A stretch of 7,628 nucleotides of DNA from Caecitellus pseudoparvulus (lineage: Eukaryota > Protista > Bigyra: Bicosoecida): assembly GCA_965644315.1 (NCBI GenBank), contig CBFFRQ010000175.1, positions 1 through 7,628 of the forward strand. Reading direction: 5' to 3'. Positions 1 to 7,628 of the stretch are shown here, one piece after another. Made by a program: the position numbers and the translations under genes. The notes under the pieces were generated by a model. It saw only the letters and a list, made by a program, of their open reading frames with translations, did no database searches and was not told the origin of the DNA. Each line of letters opens with the position of its first letter. Position 1 is the stretch's first letter.

Positions 1-35
1 CCTCACGATCCCCCGTCAGCGCCAAGAGCTCGCGC
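1..35 (-). pseudogene. Continuation of ankyrin-like gene D downstream of the insertion (runs off the window start)
   Basis: Minus strand reads (GT)G CGC GAG CTC TTG GCG CTG ACG GGG GAT CGT GAG = (V)RELLALTGDRE. Positions 21-36 (gccaagagctcgcgca) are identical to 6161-6176 of paralog B, a variant I did not see in any other repeat in the window. Confidence 0.9.
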
Positions 36-45
36 AAAATCCAAC

Positions 46-85
46 GGCCTTCGGCCTATGCCTTCGGCATGGGAGGTCTACTCCC
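46..85. other. Three stacked terminal mini-hairpins of the insertion
   Basis: GGCC-ttc-GGCC (46-56), ATGCC-ttc-GGCAT (58-70), GGGAG-gtcta-CTCCC (71-85). On the minus strand the first two have C-GAA-G triloops. Confidence 0.85.
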
Positions 86-90
86 CGTCC
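78..90 (+). repeat. Subterminal inverted repeat, inner copy (42 nt from the element end)
   Basis: CTACTCCCCGTCC matches the reverse complement of 2221-2233 (CTAATCCCCGTCC) at 12/13 positions. Confidence 0.8.
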
Positions 91-1289
91 CTCTGTGCCC
101 GGCTGCTGGCCCTTCAGAAAGCCACGGCAAAGGCTGCAGGCGTGGGGGGCGCTGCGCCAGTATGGGCGCTGCGCCGCACGACGCACCACCGCACGCAAGG
201 CAAGTCAGGTACAAGCTGGTCGGCCTTAATGTAAATGCTCCACCAGGCGCACCAGGCTGCAACACTGGCGTATCACAAGCGGTAAGCCTGGTCTCACCCT
301 TCACCACAACAAATCGGTCAGGCAGCCTGGCCGCTTTGATGTGTCCACTGAGTCACAGCAAGCCCCGTGGAGCGACCATGGCCATGGCATTGCGCCCAGC
401 GTCTGCACCCACATACACCTTGAAATGTCTAGGTGCTTTGCAGGGTGATCCGTGCACCCTTTAGGCATGAGCCCGATGAACAGTCCAGACTTTGATTGCT
501 CACGAAAATGCGATCTCATGCTGCAATGCACTGGCACACCCTCCGGGATGGCCGACGGAAAAGACAACACAGGGTACACAAAGCTCACTAACGCTTGGAG
601 GGCGGGGCCTCGTGCTCTGCGGGACGGGACGTACGAGCACATGCTTTCGGAGCAACAAGGTGCCACTTCCACGCACAAGGCCACAGGGCAGGGCTGTGCC
701 CCAACGGCACTACAAGTGCCATGCGCCTGGCCTGTGGATACAACACTGCATGGCCAGTCTACTGCTTGCTGCACAGTGGCCACTCCTGTGCCGTTGGCTT
801 GTGCAGGTCTTGCTGTATAGGCGTGCTGACTCTTTTCCGTGCTCGGTGAGCCAGTGCAAGGCCGCTTGAGCACACTGGCGCACTGGCAAGGCGATTCAGG
901 GCATTGGTAGGTCGTGTAACAAAGGTGATTGTGCTGGTAGACTCGGTTGTGCTTGCTGTAGCTTTGAGCAGTGCTGCATTGCTGAGCCTTGCCCTGGCCT
1001 GGTGATTGGCTGGCGTCTCGCACAGCGCCTTTGTGCTTGCGCAAGCGTACGAGCTCTGATGGCTTGTGCTATAGAGCCATGTGCACTTGCTTGCATCAGT
1101 GCCTTGGTGGCGTGATTGGGGTGGTGCAGGGAGTGCTGTCCGATCCAGGTCGAGGCCTTGCTTGACGGGCCAGTGATTGCTCGGCAGCGGCGTCAGGCCG
1201 CCGAGCTGGGGCTGCAAGCTTGGGCGCCGACTCGTCCATGTGCATGTGCTTGAACTGTATGCATTGCTTGGTATGCGGCAAATGGAACA

Positions 1290-1361
1290 GCTGCCGTCGG
1301 TCTCGCTGCCATGCGCGCTGCGCCAGCAGCGCGCATGGCAGCGAGACCGACTGAAGGCAGC
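1290..1361. repeat. Long perfect hairpin / inverted repeat
   Basis: 1296-1321 (gtcggtctcgctgccatgcgcgctgc) is the exact reverse complement of 1326-1351, with a 4-nt loop (gcca). The stem extends by gctgcc (1290-1295)/ggcagc (1356-1361) past a 4-nt bulge. Confidence 0.95.
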
Positions 1362-2220
1362 GCACTTGCTTGAGAATAGCAGTCCGGCCATGGCGTGGCC
1401 TGCGTGTGGTCCATGCTGGACCCAGGCATGAGCGGTGGGCGTGATGCCTCTGGCTACGCCGCCAGCACATGGAGGAGAATGCCAGCTTCCTCTGCTGCCT
1501 TGGGCTTCGAAGCCATCGCCACGCAATGCAGGGCCAATCGAAGGTGGTTCAGGCCATTGGCTACTGTCGCAGCGGAGGGGGGCGCGATTGGCATACCAAG
1601 CTTCCTACAATGCATACAAGCTGGTTCCAGATGCAGCACTTGCACAGTGCTTCGCACACGCTGCACAGCGCAAGCAATCATGACGTCATCAATGCGTTTC
1701 GCGACAATATCAGCCTGGAAACCTGCGCATTGACAGATTCCTGCACGCTGAGCGCGCCGCGGAACGGAAGAAGCCTGACAATATAGACTTACACACGAAA
1801 CACAGGCGCAGTCTGTGAATCGGAGAGTTGGAGCACAGCTGTCGCAAGCAGGGCGAGTCTGCGTTTGCCGTGAAACTCGACTAAGAAGGGCCAGTGCAGC
1901 GCGAGGGGTGGCTCTGCCCAGACCGCTACACATGCAAGAAGACAGACAATACTGAATGAGATTGTGTCTAAGGGTCCAATGTGGGATTGCCTGTCTGATC
2001 GGAGTGCAGGCACGGCCTGGAGTTCGACAGGCAAGCAATTTCCGCCTCAACAAGACCGCCTCACGCACACCAAAATGCCAGAGACTGCGAGCATTGACTC
2101 TGTTTAGCCTATTCGGTGTCTGATGTATCTGTTGAATGCATTGTCTTGTCGAGAACTGCCCGCATGCCAACCTTTATGTGCCCCATTGACAGGCCTGTCC
2201 CCCCAGACCCCCACACCCTA

Positions 2221-2233
2221 GGACGGGGATTAG
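2221..2233 (-). repeat. Subterminal inverted repeat, outer copy (2 nt from the element end)
   Basis: ggacggggattag, partner of 78-90. A perfect palindrome GACAGGCCTGTC lies nearby at 2188-2199. Confidence 0.8.
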
Positions 2234-2235
2234 GA

Positions 2236-2540
2236 ACCACATCAATGTGTCCGTGCACACATGCAGCTCGGAAGCCAGCCTCGGGCCCATCATCATCCCC
2301 AGTATGCACATCCACAGCACAATCCCCCTCCAACGCCAGAAGCTGGCGCAGCAAATCCGCGTGCCCTGTCCTGCATGCAGCCAGAAACGCTGCTGTTGAC
2401 TCGCTACTCGTCAAGCCTTCCACCTCCGCCTCCACACCACCCCCACTCCCCTGCAACAAGCTTAGCAGTTGACTCGTCTCCTCAGCATCACATGCGGTCC
2501 GCCAATTAAAAAAGAAGTGACTGCCGCTGTCGTCAGCCAT
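2236..2540 (-). pseudogene. 5' part of ankyrin-like repeat gene D (MADDSG...HGHIDV), disrupted by the insertion
   Basis: Nearly identical to the 5' end of gene B (2 differences over 2236-2504 vs 6176-6444, plus a 3-nt indel near the N-terminus). ATG at 2540 in accATGG context. Homology stops abruptly at 2236; read-through into the insertion reaches a stop at 2109-2111. Confidence 0.9.
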
Positions 2541-2551
2541 GGTATGTTGGA

Positions 2552-2568
2552 TCCAGTTTCCGCACTTC
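2552..2568 (-). promoter_or_regulatory. Conserved upstream motif GAAGTGCGGAAACTGGA of gene D
   Basis: Identical 17-mer occupying -28 to -12 relative to the ATG in all three genes with a visible start. Function is inferred. Confidence 0.5.
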
Positions 2569-2778
2569 TCTCCCACACCAACCTACGCCTACTGCACGGG
2601 TAGCTCAGGCGGCACAGGAAAGAAGCTTGATCGACACTGTACATCGTCAATCCAAGAATGGGACAATGGGTTTGACCAAGGGCATTGAATGCCCGGCATT
2701 GCGTGTCATGCCCATTTGAATGTGCTTGGCTCACGACGGGTGCATTGCCCAGGTCACAGACCACGCATGCGCCCCCGC

Positions 2779-4689
2779 TCACTCTGACCGTGAAGCCTTG
2801 CCCGCTCGCGACCCCACCGTACTGCCTGCGTGTGGCCGTGGCCGCTTCCGTGCTCTCAAGGTTGCGCGCAGCAGCACCATTGCGCGCCGCCCTTGCCGAG
2901 TGCTGGTACCGCCCCACACGGCATCTTTGCCAGGCTGTACAGCTGCCTGACCAGCCTCAAGTCGCGCTTGCAGCGGGATGGCGCGATGCCCCGTGAGAGC
3001 AAGAAGCTCTCGAACCACATCGACATGCCCTTTCCGACAAGCAAATCGGAAGCTCGCCTCAGGCCCTTCCTCACACCAAGCATGCACGTCAACCTCACGA
3101 TGCCCGGTCAGTGCCAGCAGCTCTCGCACCACATCGATGTGGCCGTTCCGGCAGGCATACCGGAAGCCATACTCCTCCTGGTCCTCACGCCCAGCATGCA
3201 CATCAACGGCCCGAGGCCCGCTCAAGGCCAGCAGCTCTCGCACCACGTCAATGTGCCCATTCCGACATGCCCACCGAAATCCAGCCTCAGAGGTCCCATT
3301 GGCCCCAGCATGCACATCAACGGCCCGAGGTCCGCTCAGAGCCAGCAGCTCCCGCACCACATCGACATGCCCTTTCCGACAAGCGAGCTGAAAGCCTGTC
3401 TCAGGCCCTTCCTCACACCAAGCATGCACGTCAACCTCACGATGCCCGGTCAGTGCCAGCAGCTCTCGCACCACATCGATGTGGCCGTTCCGGCAGGCAT
3501 ACCGGAAGCCATACTCCTCCCGGTCCTCACGCCCAGCATGTACATCAACGGCCCGAGGCCCGCTCAAGGCCAGCAGCTCTCGCACCACACCAATGTGCCC
3601 ATTCCGACATGCCCAACGAAATCCAGCCTCAGGCTTGCCCTCGGTCCCAGCGTGCACGTCAACCTCACGGTCTCCGGTCAGCGCCAGCAGCTCCCGCACC
3701 ACATCAAGGTGCCCATTCTGGCAGGCCAGCCGGAAGCCAGCCTCAGGCCCGTTCTGATCTCCAGTATGCACATCAACGGCCCGAGGCCCGCTCAGGGCCA
3801 GCAGCTCTCGCACCACGTCAATGTGCCCATTCCGACAGGCCCACCGAAATCCAGCCTCAGGCTTGCCCTCGATCCCAGCGTGCACGTCAACCTCACGATC
3901 TCCGCTCAGAGCCAGCAGCTCCCGCACCACATCGACATGTCCTTTCCGACAAGCGAGACGAAAGCCTGCCTCAGGCTTGCCCTCAGGCCCAGCGTGCACA
4001 TCAATCTCACGATCTCCGGTCAGCGCCAGCAGCTCCCGCACCACGTCGACATGCCCATTCTGGCAAGCAAGTCCGAAGCCAAAACCAGGCTTGCCCTCAG
4101 GCCCAGCGTGCACATCAACCTCACGATCTCCGGTCAGCGCCAGCAGCTCCCGCACCACATCGACATGCCCGTGTTGGCAAGCGAGATGAAAGCCTGCCTC
4201 AGGCTTGCCCTCAGGCCCAGCGTGCACATCAACCTCACGATCTCCGGTCAGCGCCAGCAGCTCCCGCACCACATCGACATGCCCATTCTGGCAAGCAAGT
4301 CCGAAGCCAAACCCAGGCTTGCCCTCAGGCCCAGCGTGCACATCAATCTCACGATCTCCGGTCAGCGCCAGCAGCTCTCGCACCACATCGACATGCCCGT
4401 TGGCGCATGCACACCGAAAGCCACGTTCAGGGTGGCCGTCGAGCCCTTGATGCACATCCACAACAAGATCCCCCTCCAACGCAAGCAGCCCACGCAGCAA
4501 CCCAACATGCCCAGTTCTGCAAGCAACCAGGAAGCCAGCTGTTGTCTCGTCACTCGTCAAACCTCCCAACACCGGCGTTGCACCATCTCCACACACTTGC
4601 AGAATGCTCAACAGTACAGTTGCCAGACTATTGTCACAGGCTGCCACCAACCGAGCCGCCAATGAATGCACACTGCTCGCATCAGCCAT
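2779..4689 (-). CDS. Ankyrin-like repeat protein A, 636 aa: 51-aa N-cap, 14 x 38-aa repeats (last one truncated), basic C-terminal tail
   Basis: Uninterrupted ORF; ATG in ccacgccATGG context; TGA at 2779-2781. Consensus GFRxACxNGHVDVVRELLALTGxRxVDVHAG matches the ankyrin pattern (LHxAAxxGHxxVVxxLLxxGADVN) with longer loops. Confidence 0.92.
   Translation of the reverse strand: MADASSVHSLAARLVAACDNSLATVLLSILQVCGDGATPVLGGLTSDETTAGFLVACRTGHVGLLRGLLALEGDLVVDVHQGLDGHPERGFRCACANGHVDVVRELLALTGDREIDVHAGPEGKPGFGFGLACQNGHVDVVRELLALTGDREVDVHAGPEGKPEAGFHLACQHGHVDVVRELLALTGDREVDVHAGPEGKPGFGFGLACQNGHVDVVRELLALTGDREIDVHAGPEGKPEAGFRLACRKGHVDVVRELLALSGDREVDVHAGIEGKPEAGFRWACRNGHIDVVRELLALSGPRAVDVHTGDQNGPEAGFRLACQNGHLDVVRELLALTGDREVDVHAGTEGKPEAGFRWACRNGHIGVVRELLALSGPRAVDVHAGREDREEYGFRYACRNGHIDVVRELLALTGHREVDVHAWCEEGPETGFQLACRKGHVDVVRELLALSGPRAVDVHAGANGTSEAGFRWACRNGHIDVVRELLALSGPRAVDVHAGREDQEEYGFRYACRNGHIDVVRELLALTGHREVDVHAWCEEGPEASFRFACRKGHVDVVRELLALTGHRAIPLQARLEAGQAAVQPGKDAVWGGTSTRQGRRAMVLLRATLRARKRPRPHAGSTVGSRAGKASRSE
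2983..4536 (-). repeat. Coding tandem repeat with 114-nt period and higher-order 228-nt and 342-nt duplications
   Basis: caccacatcgacatgccc recurs at 4267 and 4381 (114 nt apart). Repeats 2-3 resemble 4-5; repeats 9-11 resemble 12-14 (3019 vs 3361). Confidence 0.95.
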
Positions 4690-4700
4690 GGCGTGGTGGG

Positions 4701-4717
4701 TCCAGTTTCCGCACTTC
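4701..4717 (-). promoter_or_regulatory. Conserved upstream motif GAAGTGCGGAAACTGGA of gene A
   Basis: Identical to 2552-2568 and 6495-6511 at the same offset, although the flanks and the N-terminus of A have diverged. Confidence 0.5.
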
Positions 4718-5712
4718 TCACCCTCAGCAACCTACACCCCTGCACAGGCGGCACAGGCTGTACAGCACAGGGTCGCTAGTGCAGTTGCGATCCAAAGCCT
4801 GTTGCAAGTGGAAGACATGGGTGCTGTTTTGACCAAGACGATGCTTTGTCTTGCCTGCCCAGCTGCGTTGCTGAACCGCCATCCCGCTTGACCCTCAAAC
4901 GGCGCCGGCACATCGTTGCTCCTGACGCGGCCTGCGCCAGGCCGCATCCAAGCGCCGCTCGGCTCTGCAAGGCATCGAGGATGCAGCGGGAATGCTGCCG
5001 CTGGTGCCTGCTGCGTCAGCCTCGCCCCCGAGAGGGGGCCAGGCGCCCACCTCGTCCCAAATCACCTGTGGGGGAGGGCGGAAAGCTCCACCTCTCCTTG
5101 CCCCTGCCACCGTTCGCGCTGGACGTGCACCTCGAAGCCCAGCGCGGAGCCTTACGACGCCCAACGGAGACGAGACTCCCTTTCAAGCGACGCCAGAGGC
5201 GAAAAGCCGACCAGGCGCGGTGCTGGGAGCGACAGGGACACCCTGGAGCGAGTCGCCTGGCTCGGTACATGCTGGGCTGGGAGTATGGGCGGTACATTGC
5301 TGCTAGTTCTGCATTCAGGTGCAGCCGCCACGCGAGTCCGGCGTTTGCTGGGTTGGCGTGGAGGCCGGCCAAGCAAACTTGCACTGCACCGCTTGCAACA
5401 GGGCAGGGCGTGTACACATGGACACGATGCACCACATGCTTCACCCAAGGCAGCCACCAGCATGGCCTGAAGTGCCAAGAGCATTGCAGGCGAGCACTGT
5501 ATCTAGAGCAATACAAATGACCGATTTGTGGAACGTAGAAGGCCGCTGTGCAGCTGCAATGAGCCCGCCTGCCAGGCTGCACTCCATTTCTGCACTTCTG
5601 AACCAACCACAGCCGGTGCAAGTCCCGCAAACCCACCCATTCTCGTCATGCAAACTCGGCATGCGTGGCAAGGCGGGCGATCTTGACATTCTCCTTGTGC
5701 CGTCCCCCCTGC

Positions 5713-6483
5713 TCACTCTGACCGTGAAGCCTTCCCTGCCGGAGATGCTCTTGCTGACCGTCTGTGTGGCCGTGGCTGCCTCCGTGCTCTCAAGGTTACG
5801 CGCAGCAGCACCATGGACCGCCGCCCTTGCCGAGTGCTGGTGCCGCCCCACACAGCACCCTTGCCGAGCCGCACAGCTGCCTGTCCGGCCTCAAGTCGTG
5901 CTTGCAGTGGGATGGAGCGATGGCCGGTAAGGCCCAGAAGCTCTCGAATCACGTCCGCCTGTGCTCTTTCCCAGGCATAACGGAAAGCAGTGTCACTCTC
6001 GCCCCCAACTCCAGCATGCACGTCCACGGCTCGGTGCCCAGTCAATGCGAGCAGCTCGCGCACCACATCCGCGTGACCCTTAATACAGGCCCATAGGAAG
6101 CCAAACTCAGGCTCACCCACAGGCCCAGCGTGCACATCCACCTCGCGTTCACCTGTCAGAGCCAAGAGCTCGCGCACCACATCAATGTGTCCGTGCACAC
6201 ATGCAGCTCGGAAGCCAGCCTCGGGCCCATCATCATTCCCAGTATGCACATCCACAGCACAATCCCCCTCCAACGCCAGAAGCTGGCGCAGCAAATCCGC
6301 GTGCCCTGTCCTGCATGCAGCCAGAAACACTGCTGTTGACTCGCTACTCGTCAAGCCTTCCACCTCCGCCTCCACACCACCCCCACTCCCCTGCAACAAG
6401 CTTAGCAGTTGACTCGTCTCCTCAGCATCACATGCGGTCCGCCACTTCGCAAAAAAGAAGTGATTGCCGCTGTCGTCAGCCAT
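5713..6483 (-). CDS. Ankyrin-like repeat protein B, 256 aa: N-cap, 4 repeats, basic C-terminal tail
   Basis: ATG at 6483 (accATGG; MADDSG aligns with MADASS of A); 51 + 3x38 + 91 aa; ends AGKASRSE-TGA like A and C. Confidence 0.88.
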   Translation of the reverse strand: MADDSGNHFFFAKWRTACDAEETSQLLSLLQGSGGGVEAEVEGLTSSESTAVFLAACRTGHADLLRQLLALEGDCAVDVHTGNDDGPEAGFRAACVHGHIDVVRELLALTGEREVDVHAGPVGEPEFGFLWACIKGHADVVRELLALTGHRAVDVHAGVGGESDTAFRYAWERAQADVIRELLGLTGHRSIPLQARLEAGQAAVRLGKGAVWGGTSTRQGRRSMVLLRVTLRARRQPRPHRRSARASPAGKASRSE

Positions 6484-6494
6484 GGTATGTTGGA

Positions 6495-6511
6495 TCCAGT
6501 TTCCGCACTTC
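6495..6511 (-). promoter_or_regulatory. Conserved upstream motif GAAGTGCGGAAACTGGA of gene B
   Basis: Identical 17-mer at the same offset from the ATG as in A and D. Confidence 0.5.
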
Positions 6512-6722
6512 CCCACCTCTCACCAACCTACGCCTACTGCACGGGAAGCACAGGCGGTACAGGAAAGAAGCTTGATCGACACTGTACATCGTCAATCCAA
6601 GAATGGGATAATGGGTTTGACCAAGGGCACTGAATGCCCGGCATTGCGTGTCATGCCCATTTGAATGTGCTTGGCTCACGGCGTGCGCATTGCCAGCACA
6701 CAGACCATGCCTGCGCCCACGC

Positions 6723-7628
6723 TCACTCTGAGCGTGAAGCCTTGCCTGCCGGAGATAATCTTCCTGATCTTGTGTGTGACCGTGGCCGCTTCCTCGTTGA
6801 CAAAGCAGCTCGCAGCAGCACCATGGCGCGCCGCCCTTGCCGAGTGCTCGTGCCGCCCCACACGGCATCCTTGCCCGGCTCCACAGCTGCCTGTCCAGCC
6901 TCAAGTCGTGCATACACTGAGGTGGTGCGATGGCCCGTGAGGCCCAGAAGCTCTCGAACCACATCGACATGCCCATTCTGACAGGCAACATGGAAGGCAA
7001 ACTCAAGCCATTCCGCAGGCCCTGCGTGTACATCCACCTCACGATGCCCGCTTAAAGCCAACAGCTCTCGGACAACATCCGCGTGGCCGTTTGCGCAAGC
7101 TGCTCGGAAGCCAGCCTCAGGAACACCCCCAAACCCAGCGTGCACGTCCACCTCACGATGCCCAGTCAGCGCCAGCAACTCCCGCACCACATCCACGTGG
7201 CCATTCTGGCAGGCAGCTCGGAAGCAATACTCTGGTTCTTCCTCAGGCCCAGCATGCACATCAACCTCACGATGTCCGGTCAGTGCCAGCAGCTCCCGCA
7301 TCACATCAATGTGGCCGTTCTGGCAAGCAAGTCCGAAGCCAACCTCAGGCCCGTTCTCATCTCCAGCGTGCACGTCCACCTCACGATGCCCACTCAAAGC
7401 CAGTAGCTCTCGGACAACATCCACGTGGCCGTTTGCGCAAGCTGCTCGGAAGCCAGCCTCAGGAACACCCCCAAACCCAGCGTGCACGTCCACCTCACGA
7501 TGCCCAGTCAGCGCCAATAGCTCCCGCACCACATGAACATGGCCATTCTGGCAGGCAGCTCGGAAGCCAGCCTCAGGAACACCCCCAAACCCAGCATGCA
7601 CATCAACCTCACGATGCCCGGTCAGTGC
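6723..7628 (-). CDS. Ankyrin-like repeat protein C, 5'-partial (at least 6 repeats plus basic C-terminal tail)
   Basis: The frame is open to the window edge (7628-7599 = ALTGHREVDV). Same 38-aa repeat and 91-aa terminal block; TGA at 6723-6725. Confidence 0.9.
   Translation of the reverse strand, partial: ALTGHREVDVHAGFGGVPEAGFRAACQNGHVHVVRELLALTGHREVDVHAGFGGVPEAGFRAACANGHVDVVRELLALSGHREVDVHAGDENGPEVGFGLACQNGHIDVMRELLALTGHREVDVHAGPEEEPEYCFRAACQNGHVDVVRELLALTGHREVDVHAGFGGVPEAGFRAACANGHADVVRELLALSGHREVDVHAGPAEWLEFAFHVACQNGHVDVVRELLGLTGHRTTSVYARLEAGQAAVEPGKDAVWGGTSTRQGRRAMVLLRAALSTRKRPRSHTRSGRLSPAGKASRSE

Follow-up and report, generated by a model that had tools for sequence, protein, structure and literature searches.

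Copies of a putative non-autonomous Helitron2-type element occupy one fixed position in the ankyrin-repeat genes of Caecitellus pseudoparvulus

Here we describe a 2200-nt transposable element, family A, whose five genomic copies all lie at one nucleotide and on one strand of a 114-bp ankyrin unit, no two of them in the same paralog. The element is genuine and has been mobile recently. What makes it truly odd, a point absent from the initial annotation of this DNA, is that it keeps to a single position within a family of protein-coding repeats. Its ends, together with a helicase-coding relative, support its assignment as a non-autonomous HLE2 (Helitron2-type) element, the Rep half of its partner being missing. 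Within HLE2 it is a new target-specific variant; its ends and GAA-loop hairpins define no new kind. We consider it probable that the element is moved in trans by a RepHel protein that reads an ankyrin target.

The window, meaning the whole 7,628-nt stretch analysed, is contig C175; the eukaryotic assembly to which it belongs totals 30.6 Mb, has telomeres of TTAGGG repeats and is represented in marine samples. Its minus-strand genes are built from 114-bp ankyrin repeats. Excising the element from gene D, as the initial annotation proposed, restores an in-frame ...GHIDVV/RELL... (a slash marks the junction here and below), the same as the empty site of the host paralog B. The deletion 37-2236 is equivalent, a single shared T giving a 1-nt ambiguity of the boundary, and a 2199-nt deletion breaks the match to paralog B. 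With the element in place, the frame of gene D enters it and meets a stop after 42 codons. Splicing out of the element is possible on paper, using a GT 2 nt upstream and an AG at +7 at a cost of 3 codons; this AG is missing from the copy on contig C56. Beyond the element, at 2236-7628, two ankyrin genes alternate as an array in which 2236-2750 duplicates 6176-6694 at 95-98% identity; close relatives of the array proteins are metagenome or assembly sequences only.

Table 1. Features of the family A element and its host genes in the window
Feature	Position	Strand	Basis
Ankyrin repeat, continued beyond the element	1..35	-	cut by contig end
Target 3' side, GCG, common to all five copies	33..35	-	flank alignment
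Putative non-autonomous HLE2 element, family A, 2200 nt	36..2235	-	copy comparison and empty site; boundary ambiguous by one T
Terminal 62 nt, ending ATTTT, 100% identical in the C202 RepHel remnant	36..97	-	copy alignment
Three stacked 3' hairpins (71-85; 58-70; 46-56)	46..85	-	folding, end alignment
Asymmetric inverted repeat, 3' arm, 12/13	78..90	-	sequence and copies
Non-coding internal domain	370..1500	-	~70% identity to family B 5' half, inverted relative to termini
Long internal hairpin, 31-nt arms, 94%	1291..1356	.	imperfect form kept in family B
Ankyrin-like stretch, weak, target-resembling	2154..2195	-	22 bits; null maximum mean 19.4, sd 2.1
G-rich tract beyond the 5' arm; similar tract there in family B	2196..2220	-	end alignment
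Asymmetric inverted repeat, 5' arm, 2 nt from 5' TC	2221..2233	-	sequence
Host ankyrin gene D, 5' part	2236..2540	-	frame and paralog B comparison
Target 5' side, CACATTGATGTKGT, common to all three intact copies	2236..2249	-	flank alignment
Paralog B empty target	6173..6186	-	match to gene D with element removed

The termini, the asymmetric inverted repeat and the 3' hairpins of the initial annotation were all recovered from the sequence (Table 1). The three stacked hairpins fold as described (z -2.3), and the last two are C-GAA-G triloops with GCA or GGA counterparts in family B, a sister family. Helitron2 in the sense of Bao and Jurka (2013) has a 5' hairpin formed by the 5' inverted repeat; in A the C-rich 5' arm could pair with the G tract in a possible hairpin of this kind, but folding gives z +0.6. 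Terminal direct repeats are absent from A, its ends being inverted, and the score of the ankyrin-like stretch (22 bits) is not above shuffled background. A coding interior is ruled out by the lack of codon-phase bias and the many 1-nt indels in the A versus B comparison of the internal domain; a search of A gave no Pfam match. In family B the long internal hairpin is imperfect yet significant (z -3 to -6), both of its arms having changed. An Rfam search returned only sub-threshold miRNA matches for the hairpin.

Family A has three full copies, 98.5-99.9% identical, and two that retain the 3' part only. Compared with the window copy, the full copy on C157 has 2 differences in 2200 nt and that on C68 has 33; the C56 copy comprises element positions 464-2200 and the C202 copy the last 62 nt. 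The search for further copies sharing the end thus yielded four, all ending at the same base. An assembly chimera, the concern raised initially, is rejected by these four copies and by a contig of an independent marine metagenome that bridges the right junction (1326-2297), running from element interior into ankyrin sequence. The left junction, with a flank of only 35 nt, has no bridging piece among the matches listed; we accept it because the four other genomic copies support it. Read contigs that skip the 2200 nt were rejected as empty alleles of gene D, since in two runs their indels resemble those of paralog B. In run X5 the contig depth summed over the element exceeds that of unique flank several-fold, but X7 and X12 show no such excess, which hints roughly at differences between strains.

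Recent activity had been proposed from the similarity of gene D to paralog B. The similarity itself stands (2 differences in the first 269 nt of the right flank; 5 differing positions in the 35-nt left flank) but dates the gene duplication; it is the identity between copies, with 2 differences in 2200 nt, that speaks for recent movement. Comparison of empty and filled sites agreed with the earlier claim that a target-site duplication is lacking, a 1-nt duplication of T being indistinguishable from the terminal T. Two copies bear marks of their own. In the C68 copy (L035), 9 of the 33 differences fall within 24 nt (element positions 2060-2083) and give rise to a short inverted repeat, a pattern like that left by template switching. 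The C56 copy (L032:5350-5670) has lost the 5' 463 nt of the element together with part of the upstream ankyrin unit; because host flank was also removed, this was a later deletion.

The flanks of the copies define the target. The 14-mer CACATTGATGTKGT is present in 8 of 118 empty units (~7%), and its sharing among the three intact copies has p=0.0076 by triplet permutation. On the 3' side the copies agree in GCG only, matching at 20.7 of 30 positions versus 22.8 for random units. Two copies that are 99.9% identical have flanks that already diverge at -4 and +4, no more than 4 nt from the junction, and are therefore independent insertions; such divergent flanks exclude spread by conversion with the flanks. 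The sequence GT/GCG occurs ~1.1 times per ankyrin unit, so that this 5-nt motif alone accounts for the phase. However, the shared short motifs have an estimated 2e4 to 1.5e5 occurrences in the genome (extrapolated from 27 kb), and being so common they leave the five of five ankyrin locations unexplained. Genome-wide, 71 exact A sites are still empty, as against at least 472 ankyrin units and perhaps ~1000. The numbers are small: in one genome, five A sites, of which three keep the 5' flank intact, and five B sites. As for the marks once taken to suggest a new family, the T/G target is atypical, whereas GAA-loop hairpins and an ATTTT end are known from FoHeli1/2 (PMC5148889).

Family B comprises seven related copies on five contigs and has the same end plan as A: a T start, inverted repeat and G tract, then inverted repeat, hairpins and ATTTT. 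At four of five loci it inserts antisense at the sense sequence GTGG/AYGTGCA, ~39 nt from the A site, with T/C as the insertion target; at the fifth, which involves a variant unit, the site is shifted by ~3 nt. A tandem dimer occupies one locus, and there is also a copy nested inside a second one, at a T of its 5' inverted repeat. The target motif, with ~0.8 sites per ankyrin unit, resembles B's own inverted repeat, and a preference for repeat variants is not seen in B (54 of 107 units fit). Two B variants have inverted repeats matching at 13/13 through compensatory changes in both arms, and the hairpin loops change at the middle base only (GAA, GCA, GGA) with a C-G closing pair. This form, C-GNA-G, is a stable DNA triloop (PMC3201870). 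The paired changes in the inverted repeats and the loop variation confined to the middle base fit a single-stranded DNA intermediate.

The two families are also linked inside, positions 370-1500 of A being an inverted, 70%-identical copy of the 5' half of B. Opposite-orientation self-insertion gives interiors that are inverted relative to the ends (PMC5148889), and the arrangement in A is the outcome that would be expected from it. Near the 3' end of B (L026, L027, L028, L029), an internal segment of 530 nt varies in tandem copy number from one to three, its copies being 97-99% alike. An older relic of the internal domain (65-68%) lies outside ankyrin repeats on C50 (L031:4100-5430), directly past the end of a thymidylate-synthase-like gene, where it adjoins a single-copy B-like 5' end in opposite orientation. 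The genome contains no further family ending in ATTTT at the A or B site; a match on C196 was rejected because it is not in ankyrin sequence. Searches of metagenome and viral contigs by pattern or by helicase found no relatives, in a set that may omit the near relatives of this genome.

The initial annotation read the element as a non-autonomous relative of Helitron2 or Helentron and suggested that longer copies with the same ends might encode RepHel. Contig C202 supports the link: the 62 nt shared with A are preceded by an open frame with Pif1 helicase motifs, whose C-terminus aligns to the C-termini of public RepHel proteins with E down to 1e-11. This RepHel remnant occupies the same ankyrin site as A and has lost its 5' end; its junction also occurs in contigs of run X1. 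No longer element carrying the 5' end of A is present in the genome, and the assembly holds no intact autonomous partner. C202 (L033:1-2930) represents a chromosome end, where a TTAGGG array of 1.45 kb is followed by a further 1.45 kb of other sequence and then by a short telomere-repeat tract that leads directly into the helicase frame; this looks like a break within an autonomous element healed by telomere addition. The tail of the frame is basic and gives neither a Pfam nor an endonuclease match, which favours Helitron2 over Helentron.

The best genomic match of the C202 frame, at 51%, is a 2092-aa RepHel on C180 with Helitron_like_N, DUF6570 and an OTU-like motif; DUF6570 is a marker of HLE2 (PMC11417382). 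This RepHel (C180:16451-19975) looks intact and of HLE2 type, its Rep motif 2 reading RGAPHVH, in which the diagnostic residues S and L are both absent. It probably belongs to another family, since C180 yielded no 3' end of A or B type. The closest public RepHel is 41% identical to it and lies on a 2.4-kb contig without ends. Two 707-aa Pif1-like frames (C9:21214-22476 and C145:10914-12176) have near-equal scores and no Rep domain match, and are possibly a duplicated or mobile helicase gene. The search for TnpB or Fanzor, also suggested initially, gave no PF07282 match over the cut-off in the genome.

In Helitron2-type elements the 5' T is where Rep makes its nick, and the strand is then displaced by the helicase. 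Hairpins and inverted-repeat pairing fix the element end, and a single-stranded circular intermediate joins the target behind a T. Given this family background and the shared 3' end, the RepHel of the C202 type would move A in trans by the rolling-circle route. We favour, as the likely basis of target choice, direct recognition by this protein, which would itself read a longer target, GCG together with ~14 nt on the 5' side of the nick. Such a target would be found almost only in the redundant ankyrin-repeat family, which may thus serve as a safe niche, as rDNA does for R1 and R2, and family B would have moved to a second site within the same 114-bp unit.

Four other explanations deserve weighing. 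An ordinary HLE2 with a motif of ~5-8 nt, comparable to TNAT/A in FoHeli1/2, might reach ankyrin genes through regional preference, or purifying selection might let only insertions in the dispensable ankyrin family survive. The phase would then follow from the 1.1 (A) and 0.8 (B) sites per unit, and the likeness of the B motif to B's own inverted repeat, where B also nests, fits as well. However, at most ~5% of TKGT/GCG sites lie in ankyrin units, so that five of five would need very strong filtering, and the sharing of the 14-mer would be left unexplained; we regard this account as rather unlikely. Spread of one insertion per family by recombination or gene conversion between ankyrin repeats is far less probable still. 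Ankyrin arrays are recombinogenic, and the left flank of the element does leave paralog B 15 nt from the site, but the near-identical copies differ close to the junction on both sides, the 3' flanks are at background identity over 20-30 nt, and the RepHel remnant and the non-autonomous element share a site though different inside. The two copies lacking a 5' part and the T-rich end could recall a site-specific non-LTR retroelement or SINE. Target duplication and poly(A) are both absent, the C56 loss takes host flank too, the C202 break bears telomere repeats, and the shared 3' end is part of an element with a helicase frame; this RepHel link refutes the retroelement reading, which retains a negligible probability.

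Target choice might instead be guided by nucleic acid, a stretch 40-85 nt inside the 5' end pairing with the ankyrin repeat and exposing the strand nicked by Rep. An IS608-like guide and a D-loop are models for such reading. In A and two B variants, the best ankyrin-profile match on the target strand does fall inside the first ~85 nt, and in those two variants it agrees with ankyrin units at 18-19 of 21 nt. Yet the scores of 22-26 bits are within or barely over a null with mean 19.4 and maximum 25.4, agreement has decayed to 14-15 of 21 in the commonest B variant, which is still at its usual site, the offset from stretch to cut is unequal in A and B, TnpB/Fanzor is absent from the genome, and the pattern was spotted post hoc. 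A guide is accordingly improbable, and equally doubtful is a RepHel lineage in which an element-borne segment chooses targets by base pairing and sister families retarget by changing DNA. More plausibly, the ankyrin-like stretches near the 5' ends are remnants of a long stay in ankyrin genes. If true, a guided RepHel would act as a single-strand integrase that can be programmed and leaves no target duplication.

Strict targeting by eukaryotic transposons concerns mainly RNA genes, telomeres and microsatellites (PMC3706591). In the open-access literature we found no ankyrin-targeting Helitron, and the only strict Helitron case found was at Paramecium telomeres (PMC13085455). The fixed-site targeting of A and B is unusually strict for the Helitron class. 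A Helitron2 pair at two fixed sites of one protein-coding unit offers matched elements for questions of HUH target choice, and A and B repeatedly give rise to knock-outs, variable between strains, in an ankyrin repertoire that evolves fast.

Among known systems, FoHeli1 and FoHeli2, Helitron2 elements of Fusarium oxysporum, come close (PMC5148889). Like A, they start with TC, end in ATTTT, make no target duplication and have a 12-13-nt asymmetric inverted repeat whose 3' arm lies ~40-50 nt from the end; like A and B, they have a GCC-GAA-GGC hairpin core, the T ambiguity, nested and tandem copies and an invertible interior. A differs in its three stacked 3' hairpins. FoHeli1/2 are dispersed and prefer only TNAT/A (the T is given in a figure legend; PMC5148889), whereas A and B each occupy one gene-family position. 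Helentron, HINE and DINE-1 elements resemble A in having subterminal inverted repeats that stand off by 2-4 nt at the 5' end and by 38-60 nt at the 3' end, a 3' palindrome, runs of T at the termini and non-autonomous derivatives with common ends (PMC4067079). Helentrons, however, target TT or T-rich sequence, as against a lone T in A, and their transposase carries a C-terminal AP endonuclease (PMC4067079), in contrast to the basic tail in C202.

HLE2 elements have short asymmetric inverted repeats, one lying 0-4 nt from the 5' end and the other upstream of the 3' hairpin, a T-rich end, no target-site duplication, and termini in common with a RepHel-encoding element; A agrees in each respect, sharing its 3' 62 nt with the C202 remnant. 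The usual HLE2 target is T/T or T/C, compared with T/G in all five A copies. This is no bar to HLE2 membership, the usual target being only a preference and FoHeli1/2 using T/A. Canonical HLE1 Helitrons have a CTRR 3' end, an A/T target and no inverted repeats, and A shows none of these traits. In prokaryotes, IS200/IS605 elements (IS608) integrate single strands by HUH chemistry at specific motifs of 4-5 nt without duplication. A base-pairing guide of the IS608 type is not supported for A and B. IS91 likewise integrates a single strand by HUH chemistry beside a specific motif without duplication (PMC10288648). Replitrons carry short direct terminal repeats that A does not have (PMC10288648), and the Fanzor-carrying Helitron2 elements CRe-1,2,3 have a TnpB/Fanzor frame and 7-19-bp duplications, neither found here. 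The telomere-inserting Paramecium Helitrons also use only a multicopy target in fixed orientation, but they form a separate clade and their target is a simple telomeric repeat rather than one base of a protein-coding repeat (PMC13085455). R1/R2 and Dada differ in their retrotransposon or DDE chemistry, target duplications and RNA-gene targets, and resemble A and B in strictly targeting a multicopy gene, with sister families at separate sites of the unit (PMC3706591).
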